Shown: positions 6,840 to 14,363 of the stretch, piece after piece | Layout of the letters: each line of letters opens with the position of its first letter | Numbering within the stretch: position 1 is the first letter of the stretch | Sequence record: MZ443783.1 | Strand: one strand, 5' to 3' | DNA: 64,000 bases | Made by a program: the position numbers and the translations under genes | The notes under the pieces: generated by a model | What the model saw: only the letters and a program-made list of their open reading frames with translations | What the model was told of the DNA's origin: nothing | Databases searched by the model: none

Positions 6840-9716
6840 TTACTCGATCTCACTTGGTTCCCAGCACAGAATAGGACGGCGCCATACTTGGAACACACCG
6901 ATAGGGTTAGAACGGAAGTCATCAATGTACGCATCGAAAGTACGACCGCCACTGTTACCGCTTTTCATCAGTGTCCGTAAGTCCTGATACCAAGAAGCAC
7001 GTCCACCTGAGTCTGCTTCGAACAGTCCTTCCCACACCATATCAAAAGCGCCATTCCATGCGTTGAAGTGATGAGAAGAATATGCACCATCACCAACAGA
7101 ACACAGCACCATGTACTGGTAGTCTTTCACGCACGGAATCATGTAGTCATTACCGCGTGGAATAGCCGTGCCATTGTTGTTGAAGATACACTCCCAACCA
7201 GTACGGTCTGCGGCGCCCGTGGTCAAGAACAGAGGACGACGAATGATCATCATAATCCCGTTCGCCCAGCCGTCATTGCTTGACTTCTCGCAGTACGCAT
7301 TGCAGCGTAACGCACGGTCTACCGTAAACGTGGTAGAGTTTGAGAAGTCGCGGCAGTAATAGTTCGAACCCCACTTAGGTAGATACTCTGCTGGCGGCAC
7401 GAAGAAGTGACGTTCAGCCAATTCAACTTCACCGTAAGCATCATACGCAAACACGATGTACTCGAAGCCTGCTTCAATCTGAATGTTATGGCCCTGTGAG
7501 CCATAGCCACTCCACTTCCACACAACCTGCCAATCGTTTGTGTCTCGCTCAGGCATTTCCGTGATGAGCTGATACGGACGCTCGTACACATGCCACACCT
7601 TCCCTTCTTCTGTCGTGTTGATGTACAGAGAGTTAGGGTCGTTGATGTTACCGTTAGACGTACCACAGTAAACTTTATGCGATGCACCAGCAGTGTTGTA
7701 GATAGTGCCTGAGCCGATACCTGCGAACATATCCCAGTTCATCATCAGGTGCGATGTACACATTTCGTTCTGGCCTGCACCATCAGATGTTGAGAGCAGA
7801 TACTCATTGAGGTCTTTGAACGCATAGCGCACATAGTTCGAACCAGCACGGTTAACGCGGTGTACCCAGTCATGCGATTGAACTTTCGGCACAGGGAAGC
7901 ATGGGTTAGTGACAGACACGACGAAGTTTTTAGTTTCGTACATCGGCAGTTTCTTGAAGCGGTTATCACGAATCGTTACCGTGTGCTTCATGCCATATGT
8001 TTGCGCACCGTCCATACCGCCTAACACTTTATAGTACGACTCATGCGCACTCTTGGTGTTTTCGTACAGACTAGTGATGCCAAGACCAACGTTGCCGTCA
8101 CGGTCAGTGCCGCAGCAGAAGGGCACGTTACCTGAATCGAAGTCAAAGCCAACAGAGTAATAGCTGTCAGGTGAACTTGATTTAGGGCCCCAGTAGAGTT
8201 CGGTGTAAGCAGAACCTTCACCGATACCTGGCTCACCGAACACGCAGTATGCAGCACGATACACATACTGACTACCCTGGAACACACGGCGTGATGCACC
8301 AATGCGATACATAGCAGCAGGAAGACCGCCCTGAACACGGTTAACGTCAGCCGTATCATACGACACAACGAAGACATAACAGTCGGTGCCGATTGAGTTG
8401 AGAAACGCAGCACAGGCAGCAGCGTTAGTTGTACCTGGAGCTGTACCTTCGGCCGATGCGTGAATGTCAAACGAGCGGCGCTCAAGCAACGCAAGGTCAG
8501 ACTTACGAATCTTATAGACGTTCAGGCCACGCGTATCTCGGTACGTCACACCATTATAGACAGTGTAGCCATAGTCACCAGTGTCTAGGTAACGCTGATA
8601 ACCAACTACGTGCGAGAACAGTTTACTACGTGCTTGCAGCGACTGACCATTCTGATTCGACCAACTAACCGATACATCACCAGCAGCCATACGTGCTGCC
8701 CAGTCATCAGGCTTGTATGGATATGTGGTAACATCGAAGTTCACACCGTACGCGGAGCCTGGTTCTACGCAGCATGGATTACGATAGATGATTGGTGGAT
8801 CAATCACTATGTCATCAGGGATATCGACTTGACCGCAGTACAGTTGCTTCCACGTACCAGGCTGACCTCCGAGCGAACTAGGTCCAGCAGCAGGTGTTGT
8901 GTTGAACTGATAAATAGCAGACGTGCGATAGTTAATCTGGTTGTGGAGCTGAGGAACGTTCGTCCACGCAATGTGATTACCGAACGAGTTAATGCTTTTG
9001 TCGTGTGCGGCAGGAGTCGAGACAATATAAGCCTGACCGTTACTGCGAATGCCAAGTGGGTTGAAGATAGCGTTGAAGTTAACGTTACCCTCGTAGGCAT
9101 TCTTCTGCAATACAATCAGGTGAACTCCGTTACGGTGCGCCTCACGTAAAGCAGTAAGCATCGCCGTAGGCATACTCTGGTTAGTCGCAGACAACAGCAG
9201 CATGACACAACTGAACTGTTTGAAGTAGCGATAGTCACCGTTGTAGCCATAAGCGCCTGCGTTAATCTCTTGCCAGCTATGCGCCAACATATCGAGAGGC
9301 ATACGCTGCATGTAACCAACGAGCTGGCCCCATGATTCCATTGCCGAGTCGTCGTTGACAGGAGCAAGGTCGGAGATGACCAACATCGTACTGCCGTTTG
9401 TAATGTTTGCGTTGAAGCCACGCTGGGTCAGCAAATGGCGAAACACACCCATGTTGTTGATGGACTTGTTTCGGTAGTTGCCCATCCAGCCGTAGTTAGA
9501 ATCTACAAGAGGGCTACCGTCTCGAACAAATCGACCATTCATATAAACAGAGGCAAAGCCGCAGACGTATGCTTGCGCGTGTCCGTCCACTACGAACGAA
9601 GTAAAGCGGGAAGCATCTACCGCCATAGCATTAACAGCAGCCTCAGAGCCATTGCCGGGACTACCACTAAACACAGGAGTGATGCCTCGTGCGTACAGGC
9701 AACTTTGTTGCAGCAT
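6840..9716 (-). CDS. Large fibre/adhesin-like virion protein with an ILEI/PANDER-like domain (958 aa)
   Basis: RGLNVYKI...RSFDIH...FLNSI...VFVVSYD...IGA...YRAAYCVFGEPG matches the ILEI pattern; AAGGA SD. Confidence 0.7.
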   Translation of the reverse strand: MLQQSCLYARGITPVFSGSPGNGSEAAVNAMAVDASRFTSFVVDGHAQAYVCGFASVYMNGRFVRDGSPLVDSNYGWMGNYRNKSINNMGVFRHLLTQRGFNANITNGSTMLVISDLAPVNDDSAMESWGQLVGYMQRMPLDMLAHSWQEINAGAYGYNGDYRYFKQFSCVMLLLSATNQSMPTAMLTALREAHRNGVHLIVLQKNAYEGNVNFNAIFNPLGIRSNGQAYIVSTPAAHDKSINSFGNHIAWTNVPQLHNQINYRTSAIYQFNTTPAAGPSSLGGQPGTWKQLYCGQVDIPDDIVIDPPIIYRNPCCVEPGSAYGVNFDVTTYPYKPDDWAARMAAGDVSVSWSNQNGQSLQARSKLFSHVVGYQRYLDTGDYGYTVYNGVTYRDTRGLNVYKIRKSDLALLERRSFDIHASAEGTAPGTTNAAACAAFLNSIGTDCYVFVVSYDTADVNRVQGGLPAAMYRIGASRRVFQGSQYVYRAAYCVFGEPGIGEGSAYTELYWGPKSSSPDSYYSVGFDFDSGNVPFCCGTDRDGNVGLGITSLYENTKSAHESYYKVLGGMDGAQTYGMKHTVTIRDNRFKKLPMYETKNFVVSVTNPCFPVPKVQSHDWVHRVNRAGSNYVRYAFKDLNEYLLSTSDGAGQNEMCTSHLMMNWDMFAGIGSGTIYNTAGASHKVYCGTSNGNINDPNSLYINTTEEGKVWHVYERPYQLITEMPERDTNDWQVVWKWSGYGSQGHNIQIEAGFEYIVFAYDAYGEVELAERHFFVPPAEYLPKWGSNYYCRDFSNSTTFTVDRALRCNAYCEKSSNDGWANGIMMIIRRPLFLTTGAADRTGWECIFNNNGTAIPRGNDYMIPCVKDYQYMVLCSVGDGAYSSHHFNAWNGAFDMVWEGLFEADSGGRASWYQDLRTLMKSGNSGGRTFDAYIDDFRSNPIGVFQVWRRPILCWEPSEIE

Positions 9717-9736
9717 GTTATGTCCTTAAGATCGGC

Positions 9737-9761
9737 AAGAGGGGCCGAAGCCCCTTCTTTT
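9737..9761. terminator. GC hairpin with UUCG tetraloop; possible terminator or processing site
   Basis: Minus strand GGGGC-TTCG-GCCCC; T-rich flanks (stronger on the plus strand). Confidence 0.55.
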
Positions 9762-11778
9762 AGTCGAATACTACGTTTGTGATTGCGATGTAGTCCATGT
9801 TGATACCATCACCCCTATCCCAACCAGACGACACGTACAGCCAAATCTCTTGACCGACAGGTACGTCTACGTTTATCGTGTAGGTCTGAATTGCGGTGGT
9901 ATTCAGTGGATGGAAGACATTGTTCGGCGCAGTGCGCTCGTACCAATCAAGGCCACTGTGCCATGAACCCTGTTTACCTGAGTAGCGAATATCAATAGTG
10001 ATTTGAGTAATGCGGCGCGTGAAGAAGTTGTTCCATTTGAACCAACCTTTCGAGCCACCCCAAAGAACACCATAATCACCATCAGGCGAACGTACCTGCG
10101 ACCAGAAGTCACCAAAGCCACGACCACCAGTATGTTCAATCTGATAGCAGTACCAAGGGAAACTATCTGCAACAGGAGGTTGTGCGTTGTCGCCTTCAAT
10201 CGTCACGCAACGATAAGGAACCGTGAAGTCACTAACGTTGATATGTGGCGGCTGAATAGGACAGTACACATAGTACGACCAATCACATCCGATAGGTGCA
10301 GTCACGCGTACAGTGATGTTGGCGCGAAGCACATGCTCAGGGTATTTCCAAAATTCGAGTGTACCAGTTTTCCCAGCTACAACGATTGACGTATCGAGCA
10401 GGTTCATGTTCTGGTCAAACACTTCAAACTTCGTATCAAACGAATTGGCTACACAAACAATAAGCTGTGCGCGAATGTCCGTTTGAGTTCCTAATGCAAA
10501 ATTATCTTCTGTAGTTGGATGCCCGGCAGAGTACACGCTATAACTCTGACATGGGTGCATAAACTCACGCGCACCACGTTCACCAGGACAGTACAGGCTG
10601 TAGAAACAGCTCGCAAGTGATGCAGCGTTACCGAAGTCCTTGCTAACCACACGCACCATGATATCACACGCAACACCTTTCGGGTCGAAGTAGAAGTACA
10701 GGTAACCTTCTCCTGTCTGTGCGTCAAGTGTTGTTGCGATACGTCTGCCGGATTGATAGACCTCGATGAAGTCGAAGGTCTCCCATGACGTGTAATCGAG
10801 ATACATCCAGCCAGCTACCCAACCGATGAAGTGATAATACTCAAACGCGTTCGAGTTCTGAATGCGTTCTGTAATAGGCCAGACAGTTGCATGACACGGT
10901 GCAGGGAAGATAGGGCTGCCGATATAATCGGGGTGAATGACGTCAGGGAAGTTGATAACGTCATACGCTGCCTGACTATCGAGAGCCAAACCACCACGGT
11001 CAGAAGGTGCTGCAAGACGAGGCGGATAGACTTCTAAGCTCCAGCTATAACCTTGCGTAGTACGCACACGCACCATGATACGCATATCAGCAGCGTCAGG
11101 GTCGAACTGGAACTTGATACGCGAACGACCAACAACCTTACCGCATGTCGAAGCAACACGCACACCCATGTGGTACACGTCAACGCTTGCACCAGCAGGA
11201 GCATACGATGCAATCATCAGCTCCACGTAGCCTTCAACAGCAGGCATTGCGTAGATTGTTTCAGTGATTGTTGCACCACGACCATGAGTGGACGCATACG
11301 GTACGTTAGGGTTAGCATATGTACCAAGCCCTGAACGCGAGGCCACGCCGACAGGGTCGTAGGTCTCAATAGTCTTAATACCAGGGCGATTGATAGATCG
11401 TCCAGTAGGTGGAGCAAATGAGTTAACAAGGCCGAAGCCAGTACGCCCAGCATCAGGCAAATCAAAGCCAGCAGGATAGCCTTTAAGAATATCATACTTC
11501 TCACGACCACCTGAGCCGATGCCATTACCAGAGCCTTTAGTTGTCGATGTAGGACCGCCGCCACACGCACCAGTTTCGAGATTCGAACAAGGGTCATCGT
11601 AAGTGGGATCGAACGAGTCATCAATTAGATGCCAGCGTTGACCCCACTGATTTCTGACGCTGAACTTCTCAGGAGTAAGAGGAGTCCAGTCACCTTCTTG
11701 TGTGCGTATGAACATAGGCGTGTCAACACAATCGTGCCAACCGTTATTCGCAGCATTACGAACGCGAAAACGTGCCAC
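9760..11778 (-). CDS. Virion protein with three tandem ~100-aa beta-sandwich repeats (672 aa)
   Basis: Three units, each ending I(M/T)VRV...(W/F)S/Y..Y(P/C)P; AGGAG SD. Confidence 0.75.
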   Translation of the reverse strand: MARFRVRNAANNGWHDCVDTPMFIRTQEGDWTPLTPEKFSVRNQWGQRWHLIDDSFDPTYDDPCSNLETGACGGGPTSTTKGSGNGIGSGGREKYDILKGYPAGFDLPDAGRTGFGLVNSFAPPTGRSINRPGIKTIETYDPVGVASRSGLGTYANPNVPYASTHGRGATITETIYAMPAVEGYVELMIASYAPAGASVDVYHMGVRVASTCGKVVGRSRIKFQFDPDAADMRIMVRVRTTQGYSWSLEVYPPRLAAPSDRGGLALDSQAAYDVINFPDVIHPDYIGSPIFPAPCHATVWPITERIQNSNAFEYYHFIGWVAGWMYLDYTSWETFDFIEVYQSGRRIATTLDAQTGEGYLYFYFDPKGVACDIMVRVVSKDFGNAASLASCFYSLYCPGERGAREFMHPCQSYSVYSAGHPTTEDNFALGTQTDIRAQLIVCVANSFDTKFEVFDQNMNLLDTSIVVAGKTGTLEFWKYPEHVLRANITVRVTAPIGCDWSYYVYCPIQPPHINVSDFTVPYRCVTIEGDNAQPPVADSFPWYCYQIEHTGGRGFGDFWSQVRSPDGDYGVLWGGSKGWFKWNNFFTRRITQITIDIRYSGKQGSWHSGLDWYERTAPNNVFHPLNTTAIQTYTINVDVPVGQEIWLYVSSGWDRGDGINMDYIAITNVVFD

Positions 11779-11787
11779 ATGTTCTCC

Positions 11788-12279
11788 TTATGGGCGAACC
11801 CAAATAGCTCCTGGAGCTACTTCGTTGTCTATAGCAGGGTCAGTGTCTTGAACAAACACCTGTACTGCACCAGGATTACCGGGAGCACCCGTTGCGCCAG
11901 TAGGACCAGTTGGACCAGCAGGACCACGATTACCCACATAACCCTGTTTACCCATCTGACCATCAGAACCACGAGGACCTGGGCAACCGTCAGTACCGCG
12001 ACGACCATCGTTACCCATGAGACCGTCGATACCGTCACGACCAGAAGGACCAACGCCACCAGCAGGGCCATAGCCTATGCTGTGAATGGTAGGCAGTCCA
12101 GCAATCTGCAACTTACCAATCGACGGTATATTCAGAGCAAGCACACCCGTCAGAGCATCAAACGAACCGTTGAGTGTGCTGTCATCTTCGGCAGTGTCTA
12201 CTGTCAGACCGCCTTGAGTCGCTACGACAGGACCAGATGCGTTGGTCTTGACTAGCGCTATATCAACTTTTTCTACCAT
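11788..12279 (-). CDS. Collagen-like fibre protein (163 aa)
   Basis: G-X-Y run including GTDGCPGPRG; FDALTGVLAL...GLPT N-terminal motif; C-terminal GAIWVRP. Confidence 0.85.
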   Translation of the reverse strand: MVEKVDIALVKTNASGPVVATQGGLTVDTAEDDSTLNGSFDALTGVLALNIPSIGKLQIAGLPTIHSIGYGPAGGVGPSGRDGIDGLMGNDGRRGTDGCPGPRGSDGQMGKQGYVGNRGPAGPTGPTGATGAPGNPGAVQVFVQDTDPAIDNEVAPGAIWVRP

Positions 12280-12288
12280 GATTACTCC

Positions 12289-12921
12289 TTACGGCCAGGT
12301 AGTGCCTTGATCTTTTGTCGGGTCAACCCAGATTGTTCCAGCAGCAACTGCGCCCGGCTGGGTAGCACTCACAATGATAGACAGACGACCAGCAGGACCC
12401 GCTGCACCAGTAGGACCTGTAGGACCTGTAGCGCCAGTCTTACCAGTAGGGCCTGTGCCACCACGAGGACCAGTAGGCCCTGTAGGCCCCATAGGACCTG
12501 TGCGACCGTCTGGGCCAGTAGGACCAACAGGTCCAGGCAGACCATCACGTCCATCTGGACCTGGAATACCCTGTTCCCCGTCAGGACCTATCTCACCGTC
12601 ACAGCCCTGTTCACCAGGATTACCGTCACGCCCATCACGACCGTCTTTGCCGTCTGCACCAGTTTCACCACGACCACCCTGACGACCTTCTGGTATGTCA
12701 GCAGCAGTAGGGAAACCATTGACCTTAACAGTCTGGCCATTAGCAAACTTGAGCGTTAGAATACCGCTGGTGGCATCGAACGACGAGTCGGCAGTAAGCT
12801 CGGACGGCACGTCTGCATCAGAAGGATTGATAGTCAGCGTACCGCGCGAAGCTCTGATTGGAGTGGGCGTAGAGGACGAACCAGCTTGAATGAGGCCCGT
12901 GTTTACTTTAATCAGACCCAT
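12289..12921 (-). CDS. Collagen-like fibre protein (210 aa)
   Basis: Long G-X-Y run including GEQGCDG; C-terminal [17 protein letters not shown]. Confidence 0.85.
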
Positions 12922-14363
12922 TACGTTTTCTCCGCTTTAGCAACGATATCCGTATTGTGCACCAACACATCTCCTACGAAGTAACAGTCAAACGGGTCAA
13001 CGTCTATATCAACCGTCTGCACCTGCTCATCGACACGAACAAATTCAGATACAGCGATAGGTCCTTTACGGCCTAAGACAGTTTGACCCATACGAACATC
13101 ACGCGCAGGAACATAGCGCCATACGGACTCATCATAAATCAATACTGGATGTTCGTGAGTGAACTTCTGACCGTTGATCACATAGTAATGATCTTCTTGG
13201 CCGAGCTTCAACGCTTTCACCGTAGCGTACACGGTGTTGCCTTTGAGACTAGGCGAAGACCAATTACGAAACTCCTTAGGCTGGTTCGAGTAACCAAGCA
13301 GCGCATCGCCGACACGCAAGTTCTCTACAGCTTTAGGACCAACGATAGTGTTCACGGTACTGCCAAACACGATACAGCCAGATGTTGCAGTGTTGATAGG
13401 GTTACGTGCTACGACAGTCAAAGCAGAACGCACCGTAACAGTCGGACGTGAAGGTTGACCCATATCAGTTACGAGACAGCTAATGGTGCCTTTGATTGTA
13501 CGATCGGCACCTAAGCCTAAACGCAGATAGAAGTTAACAATGCAGGTGTTTGTCTCGACAGCATCAAGAGTCACACCTTCTGTGGTTGTGATAGTCCATT
13601 TATACTTATACGGACCAACGCCACCACGAGCATTGACAGGCAGATACGCCAGCGACGTAAACACGTCAGAGCCTTGCACTGTACGTTGACCTACCATGTA
13701 CAGATTGGACACTGACGCAGCAAGAGGTGTGATTGTAGGCAGAGGCGGAGCAGGAGTAACGTTGGCTGTAGGGTACAACCAAACGAACACTTTACCGTCT
13801 GTAGGCTGTGTGTTAGATAGCACGGCTGTAGTGATAGGCGCTGGACCAGTAGCACCAGTAGCACCCGCAATACAGCTAGGACCATCATTACCGCGAGGAC
13901 CGATAGGGCCAGTAGGACCAGTCGCGCCGTCAGGACCAGTAGGACCATCAGGACCTTGACGCCCGGTGTCTCCGGGAGGACCGTCTTCACCGTCACGCCC
14001 AGGGTCACCTACAGGACCAGTCTTACCTCTATTGCCTACACCGCCCGGACAACCTTGTTTGCCGGTCTCACCATCACGCCCGTCACGACCATCTCGACCA
14101 GGAGAACCTGGAGCGCCTCGACGCCCAGGTTTACCTTCGCCAAACATCGCAACAGTGGGCAACCCAGGGATGTTCACCACATCCCCGTTCTGCTTGATGA
14201 ATACCAACACACCTGTCTTGCTGTTAAATCTTACGCTGGCGAGCTGTGTTAATGTTGCCACATCGGAGTTTTCAAACTTAGCCACTCCGTCAACACCAAT
14301 CAATGATTTACCTTCATCGTTCGGTGTTGTTTCGACTTGCGAAAGTTTTAACTGTGTTGTCAT
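12921..14363 (-). CDS. Collagen-like fibre protein with C-terminal Hint (intein-like) domain (480 aa)
   Basis: G-X-Y run, then an Ig-like segment, then CIVFGS...THEHP...VDIDV...VLVHN|T. Confidence 0.85.
12954..13376 (-). other. Hint/mini-intein-like domain (141 aa, no homing endonuclease)
   Basis: Cys1, block B TxxH (THEH), block F and terminal His-Asn followed by Thr are all present. Confidence 0.85.

Follow-up and report, generated by a model that had tools for sequence, protein, structure and literature searches.

A type-A-BIL-like Hint domain that ends a collagen-like phage tail fibre, a candidate self-removing module

Type A bacterial intein-like (BIL) domains keep a terminal His-Asn pair, have no nucleophile at the position that follows it (+1) and reside in variable, non-conserved host proteins (PMC4031507; PMC7765530). 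They cleave at both ends, and the cleavage products dominate while splicing is minor (PMC4031507; PMC7765530). Further described systems are the BIL2 domain of Tetrahymena thermophila BUBL1, which hands the upstream C-terminus to a Lys amine (PMC8616854), the pretoxin HINT domains (PF07591), which release a neighbouring part of their protein (PMC3482391), and Hedgehog, which needs a sterol-recognition region after its Hint domain (PMC7765530). Here we analysed a stretch of 64,000 nucleotides from Erwinia phage pEa_SNUABM_28 (MZ443783.1), referred to as the window, in which a minus-strand gene encodes a collagen-like fibre of 480 amino acids that ends in a Hint domain. The gene corresponds to positions 74921-76363 of the record with 100% identity. 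BIL domains were found to be the best match among known relatives of this Hint domain, by sequence, profile and fold. With roughly even confidence, we propose that it is a type-A-BIL-like, single-turnover module that removes itself from the C-terminus of the fibre.

The original prediction described a collagen-like fibre ending in a Hint domain with Cys1, a T-H-E-H block B, a D-I-D-V motif and a terminal Asn. The translation of the open reading frame (ORF) and the Pfam matches to Collagen and PT-HINT agree with this description. The domain begins with C-I-V-F-G directly after T-A-T-S-G, carries D-I-D-V at residues 452-455 and ends with V-H-N. A comparison with hidden Markov models of Hint families had been suggested as a check. 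It returned PT-HINT (PF07591) as the best Pfam family with an E value of 4.1e-5, which at 24.3 bits vs 27.7 lies below the gathering cut-off, and Hint_2 with 1.1e-3; several orthologues have a precomputed PF07591 match. In a single-sequence search of the PDB, the BIL domain 2lwy from Clostridium thermocellum ranked top (9e-6), and with a family profile the values were 5.2e-22 for 2lwy and 8.6e-13 for Tetrahymena BIL2. The predicted length of 141 residues was exact in the translation. Since the domain also aligns end to end with the 138 residues of 2lwy, there is no room for an endonuclease, and no homing endonuclease domain or remnant was found within the 141 residues.

The AlphaFold2 (AF2) model of residues 322-480, built from 77 sequences, has a predicted local distance difference test (pLDDT) value of 92.9 and a predicted template modelling score (pTM) of 0.88. 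A Foldseek search of this model against the PDB placed 2lwy first (2.9e-9, template modelling (TM) scores 0.71/0.81), followed by Tetrahymena BUBL1 BIL2 (2.7e-7) and, at lower ranks, by mini-inteins and the Hedgehog autoprocessing domain. All 48 matches listed at E<=1e-3 are BIL, intein or Hedgehog domains, with TM scores up to 0.81. These matches are far above chance and confirm that the C-terminal domain is a Hint domain.

Orthologues of the fibre were found in 32 phage records by DNA and 60 by protein, from Alexandravirus, Sasquatchvirus, Yoloswagvirus, Rivsvirus, Snuvirus and one Yersinia phage. In 19 orthologue clusters (45-91% identity), Gly329, Cys330, Thr402, His403, Glu404, His405, Asp452 to Val455, His469 and Asn470 are among the invariant residues. 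For the wider family, a full HMMER search with the Hint region against 1.84 billion representatives (E<=1e-3) identified related Hint domains in 532 clusters (50% identity); our counts refer to the 148 listed matches outside the orthologue group of the fibre, which hold 199 domains. These members share about 25-35% identity with the Hint domain of pEa_SNUABM_28. Their catalytic residues are kept almost throughout, with Cys1 in 164/164, the block B Thr in 175/184 and His in 176/184, the terminal His in 187/187 and the Asn in 186/186. The His-Asn pair lies at most 20 residues from the C-terminus in 115 of the 148 matches, with tails of 1-20 residues and a median of seven. None of these 115 C-terminal members ends exactly at His-Asn, so the bond after the Asn is always retained. 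Otherwise dissimilar proteins keep the nucleophile together with block B, the terminal Asn and the bond that follows it, which argues that the chemistry is used.

In the predicted reaction, an N-to-S acyl shift at Gly329-Cys330 would produce a thioester, and Asn470 would cyclise and thereby cut the Asn470-Thr471 bond. The thioester would be resolved mainly by water or a thiol, with a small fraction of the fibre possibly being joined to the tail again. From a precursor of 50.4 kDa, this would yield a fibre of about 329 residues and 33.5 kDa ending in T-A-T-S-G, a free Hint domain of 15.8 kDa and a decapeptide; a fibre with the tail re-joined is predicted at 34.6 kDa. Before its release, the Hint domain may serve as a folding or assembly aid, or it may mask or cap the distal tip. 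The idea that Hint autoprocessing matures the fibre was strengthened by the catalytic residues, and the three outcomes that had been proposed (release of a folding chaperone, splicing onto the short tail, attachment of a small molecule or another protein) are not equal. Removal of the C-terminal module fits the behaviour of type A BIL domains best (PMC4031507), and the chaperone role is conjecture.

Alternatively, the Hint domain could stay on the fibre unprocessed, as a distal and perhaps receptor-binding domain. In favour of this, no globular domain lies further out on the fibre, the full product is annotated as a virion structural protein in the reference, and the Hint domain evolves at about the rate of the remaining fibre domains (mean pairwise identity 0.66). 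However, a structural domain needs neither Cys1 nor the block B Thr and His nor His-Asn to be retained across such divergent sequences, nor does it require a residue after the Asn. Moreover, the Hint domain also forms the end of proteins whose partner domains are many and unrelated. We therefore regard permanent retention as quite improbable.

The comparison with type A BIL domains such as 2lwy reveals many common features. Both have Cys1, T-x-x-H, the terminal His-Asn and no endonuclease, and both reside in variable, non-enzymatic hosts, surface proteins in one case and a tail-module fibre with variable partner domains in the other. The lack of a conserved +1 nucleophile applies to the family as a whole but not to the present sequence. 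The terminal His-Asn of the BIL relatives makes them type A by the cited definition. In contrast to 2lwy, the domain described here belongs to a phage virion protein, lies at the extreme C-terminus and is followed by Thr in this phage. Among the 115 C-terminal members of the wider family, the +1 residue is Ala in 22, Lys in 19, Ser in 11, Leu, Val or Ile in nine each and Thr in four, so that only 15 have Ser, Thr or Cys.

As a further alternative, the domain could be a selfish mini-intein that entered the fibre gene at its 3' end and is tolerated there. True inteins do occur at other sites in the jumbo phages of this group, e.g. in the terminase (PMC7412058), and the annotation of the close relative pEa_SNUABM_16 places an HNH endonuclease gene in this tail module, about 8 kb downstream. 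However, the domain itself has no endonuclease, the host protein is not conserved, the insertion point lies 10 residues from the end and the same terminal build recurs on unrelated tail proteins. No allele without Hint was found among 17 clusters with the same middle domain, all of which are 477-480 residues long. Together with the variable +1 residue and the terminal position, this argues against a selfish intein, which we consider highly improbable, and also indicates that splicing of the tail is not the conserved purpose of the domain. The distinction from an ordinary intein that the original prediction drew is therefore upheld. Mini-inteins (gp41-1, Npu DnaE, the Mtu RecA splicing domain) have the same fold and the catalytic blocks A, B, F and G, and the Thr at +1 in this phage would permit class-1 chemistry. 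Unlike them, the phage Hint domain does not lie in a conserved enzyme site and varies at +1 among its relatives, and alleles lacking it were not found. None of the features of class 1 inteins, a conserved insertion site with free alleles, a conserved +1 residue and an endonuclease, was found here.

In class-1 splicing, Thr471 would attack the thioester and Asn470 would cyclise, joining the tail to Gly329 in a fibre of 339 residues and 34.6 kDa. Cys1, T-x-x-H, His-Asn and Thr at +1 are all present in this phage, and +1 is Thr in 17, Ser in one and Ala in one of the 19 orthologue clusters, that is, a nucleophile in 18 of them. It has also been shown that a type A BIL domain spliced once +1 was a nucleophile (PMC4031507). 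On the other hand, +1 is Ala in phage NCTB, Val in Yersinia phage fHe-Yen9-02 and Met in Alcaligenes phage Afa-NA1, the few nucleophiles in the wider family point in the same direction, and the added decapeptide has no apparent function. Splicing onto the short tail is thus chemically possible via Thr471 and not conserved, and we consider it rather unlikely as the main outcome.

The conservation of the tail was also considered as proof of a function at the protein level, and this was rejected in part. The tail codons GCG GAG AAA are identical in 11 orthologous loci, including synonymous sites, while the adjacent codons vary. They carry the GGAG Shine-Dalgarno sequence of the next gene. The start codon of that gene, ATG at 12919-12921, and the stop codon of the fibre gene overlap by one base, with TAATG or TAAATG among the loci. 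The invariance of Ala-Glu in the tail therefore largely reflects a constraint on the nucleotides, and much of the conservation that could be taken in favour of splicing has the same origin. Lys479, which is invariant, lies inside the same ribosome-binding region, whereas Lys476 varies among the orthologues (Lys, Gln, Arg, Leu). In Afa-NA1, the tail is present although the ribosome-binding site of the next gene lies outside the fibre gene.

A further feature of the tails is their Lys content. Lys occurs in the tail of 110 of the 115 C-terminal members, and tails of a single residue consist of Lys in five of six cases. As a control, Lys was found within the last seven residues of 27/75 long phage ORFs (Fisher p about 6e-20, with a small control). 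The control, though small, speaks against an explanation of this excess as a mere effect of ribosome-binding sites or translation termination. In internal or tandem Hint domains, +1 is occupied by Lys in 52/72 cases. Relatives such as P0055, P0119 and P0160 contain several tandem Hint domains with Lys and oligo-Gly linkers between them, and would break into pieces if every domain were active. Upstream of Cys1, Gly occupies the -1 position in 92/160 domains, and at least two Gly residues are found at -1 to -4 in 81/164, which indicates a flexible, exposed junction.

These observations may be read as signs of a ligase-like use of the thioester, in which Gly329 would be passed to a Lys side chain, either of its own tail, giving an isopeptide 'splice' and a branched tip, or of another virion protein, giving a covalent anchor or cross-link. 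The Lys in the C-terminal flank marks the clade, the junction is Gly-rich, and the second-closest structure, Tetrahymena BIL2 (6y75, 6tmm), forms a Lys isopeptide with its own C-terminal flank and conjugates to other proteins (PMC8616854). BUBL1 BIL2 has the fold in common with the phage domain, but it is eukaryotic, shares about 16% identity and is flanked by ubiquitin-like domains, none of which occurs in the phage fibre. Lys transfer by the phage Hint domain would be analogous to that of BIL2 and is purely an inference. In this phage, Lys is found at +6 and +9, where the former varies and the latter is confounded with the ribosome-binding region, and a tail Lys could have another role, in catalysis, solubility or translation termination. 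Hence, we judge a ligase-like activity to be unlikely. If true, it would represent a built-in, ATP-independent protein ligase and a new post-translational step of virion assembly in hundreds of phage tail-protein clusters.

Compared with the other described systems, the phage Hint domain shows both likenesses and clear differences. The Hog domain of Hedgehog (1at0, 6tyy) has the same fold and is likewise a C-terminal Hint domain that releases an N-terminal functional part via a thioester. The Hedgehog thioester forms at a Gly-Cys junction, and the Hog domain is not known to have a terminal His-Asn. In contrast, His-Asn is invariant in the phage domain, and only 10 residues follow Asn470, with no adduct-recruiting region. 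A Hedgehog-style adduct with a small molecule, as envisaged in the original prediction, thus found no support. In the polymorphic toxins, a toxin domain follows PT-HINT, whereas no domain follows the phage Hint. With a Lys-bearing tail of only 1-20 residues, the phage Hint domains have essentially nothing to ligate. The intramolecular chaperone Peptidase S74 is likewise located at the C-terminus of trimeric phage fibres, and self-removal is the presumed outcome in both cases. Its fold and chemistry are unrelated, so the analogy is one of position only, and no match to Peptidase S74 was found in the 480-residue protein at E<=1.

Several points weigh against self-removal as the fate of this domain. 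Thr occupies +1 in 17 of the 19 close clusters, and true splicing could be dominant in this clade. The near-universal Lys of the tail is left unexplained by plain hydrolysis. Moreover, we know of no Hint domain that acts as a folding chaperone, and the benefit of a removable Hint module is conjecture.

The original prediction dealt with the Hint-ended fibre of this phage alone, but the architecture is widespread. The GenBank notes on Y3_110 and on NCTB BN7874_136, BN7874_135 and BN7874_132 already mention an intein domain. The Hint module also ends other tail proteins, in related as well as in unrelated phages. Among 74 relatives, PT-HINT (PF07591) matches 45, and the partner domains include collagen (13/74), fn3, Ig, Calx-beta, PKD, BACON and the N-terminal domain of tail-collar fibres; the PHROG matches of the relatives are tail-fibre families. 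The neighbourhoods comprise jumbo-phage modules of the same kind with two Hint-ended proteins (loci L006 and L021), and a siphophage-like arrangement of a 1763-residue protein, which is possibly the tape measure, NlpC/P60 and a 1192-residue protein together with the Hint-ended protein. On one contig, the genes of a P2-like baseplate precede a fibre that has a weak precomputed Peptidase_S74 match, and the Hint-ended protein comes next. Taken together, the partner domains and neighbourhoods of the Hint-ended proteins are those of phage tail modules; one relative sits in a lysis-gene neighbourhood.

The contig with the P2-like baseplate (L019) is a 56-kb myophage contig. At 7541-10089 on its plus strand, the fibre combines Phage_fiber_2 with the weak S74 match, and the next gene encodes a 362-residue protein with a terminal PT-HINT. 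If the S74 match is real, two unlike self-cleaving C-terminal modules adjoin here. The tail module of phage NCTB contains three Hint ORFs, one of which is free-standing. This ORF, BN7874_135 (L005, 8698-9159, minus strand), lies directly after the fibre gene and encodes a Hint-like protein of 153 residues, with only seven residues before the Cys and three after His-Asn.

Table 1. Positions in the window of the Hint-ended fibre gene, its parts and its paralogous neighbours
Feature	Position	Strand	Evidence
Whole gene, 480-codon fibre precursor and stop codon, 50.4 kDa	12921..14363	-	ORF translation
N-terminal domain, residues 1-76, common to both downstream paralogues; presumed virion-attachment end	14136..14363	-	
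Collagen-like region, residues 77-175	13839..14135	-	Pfam Collagen, triplet count
Linker and middle (distal) domain, residues 176-329, possibly Ig-like, last residue Gly329	13377..13838	-	weak matches
Hint domain, residues 330-470, 141 residues, 15.8 kDa, without endonuclease	12954..13376	-	translation, Pfam, PDB, model
Cys330 codon, Hint position 1, predicted nucleophile	13374..13376	-	
Block B T-H-E-H, residues 402-405	13149..13160	-	
His469-Asn470, last two residues of the Hint domain, predicted site of Asn cyclisation	12954..12959	-	
C-terminal tail, 10 residues (471-480), Thr at +1, Lys at +6 and +9	12924..12953	-	
GGAG Shine-Dalgarno of the next gene, within tail codons 477-478	12930..12933	-	synonymous-site conservation
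First paralogous collagen-like fibre gene, 210 residues, without Hint	12289..12921	-	homology to the Hint fibre
Second paralogous collagen-like fibre gene, 163 residues, without Hint	11788..12279	-	homology to the Hint fibre

Regarding the anatomy of the remaining protein, the collagen-like region consists of 29 unbroken G-X-Y triplets from Gly77 to Gly161, followed by Cys164 at a Gly position and three more triplets. With this long unbroken repeat and a Pfam Collagen match of 6.7e-14, the protein qualifies as a collagen-like fibre. Cys105, at an X position, and Cys164, at the break of the repeat, flank most of the triple-helix region. Both are invariant in the 19 orthologue clusters, and they might form inter-chain disulfides. 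Residues 176-329 comprise a Pro-rich linker and then the distal domain, whose last residue, Gly329, precedes the predicted scissile bond. The matches of this domain are weak (SprB repeat, 0.01; phage decoration protein 5lxk, 0.013), and NCBIfam gave only sub-cut-off matches to collagen adhesins. From its sequence, it possibly adopts an immunoglobulin-like (Ig-like) fold.

pEa_SNUABM_28 is a jumbo myophage of 267 kb, and its relative pEa_SNUABM_16 (97.7% identity) is classified in Alexandravirus. The fibre gene belongs to a tail module on the minus strand in which the genes are densely packed. In annotated relatives, the order upstream is PAAR and baseplate-wedge genes, a 1511-residue tail protein, a 780-residue protein and then the Hint-fibre gene, which is followed by two short collagen-like fibre genes, proteins of 672 and 958 residues and more fibre genes. 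The three tandem paralogues of 480, 210 and 163 residues (11788-14363, minus strand) have a common N-terminal domain, a G-X-Y start and the Cys105 register, and they differ in the length of the collagen region. Their trimers could be separate homotrimers or mixed, both of which are conceivable. The 672-residue neighbour (9760-11778, minus strand) resembles the N-terminal 470 residues of a 1304-residue protein of NCTB (35% identity, 6e-76). This NCTB protein (L005, 3420-7334, minus strand) carries Calx-beta and a C-terminal Hint domain, while its homologue in the window has no Hint domain, which indicates that orthologues of this neighbour have acquired or lost the Hint module. Besides that of the fibre, no further Hint domain was found in the 64-kb window, and a scan for promoters and terminators gave a result at chance level.

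In the searchable literature, we found no publication that deals with a phage fibre ending in a Hint or BIL domain, or with the function of such a domain; the matches for phages phiCbK and CBB concern only inteins of the terminase or the ribonucleotide reductase. The chemistry of Hint and BIL domains and the GenBank notes 'contains intein domain' on relatives are already known. We found no account there of how broadly the terminal architecture occurs on phage tail proteins, of how it differs from inteins, of the Gly-rich junction or of the rule of a short Lys-bearing tail.

Overall, our data show that a BIL-type Hint domain ends the tail proteins of at least 115 diverged clusters (50% identity), among the 532 with a related Hint domain. 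To our knowledge, self-cleaving C-terminal modules on phage fibres are known from one family only, the S74 intramolecular chaperones. If active, the Hint domain would be a second, chemically different module of this kind, and tail assembly would gain a maturation step. It would also give a concrete biological setting to the type A BIL domains, which still lack a well-defined natural role, and would provide a large natural set of compact, C-terminal self-cleaving domains, for whose chemistry the Lys rule of the tails is a specific and checkable clue. With respect to annotation, the mature fibre probably has a mass of about 33.5 kDa instead of 50.4 kDa. Y3 and AD1, relatives in the group of pEa_SNUABM_28, are 'hairy' myophages (PMC6143709), and the mature mass matters for the virion proteomes of such jumbo phages, whose hair or fibre proteins are still unassigned (PMC6143709).

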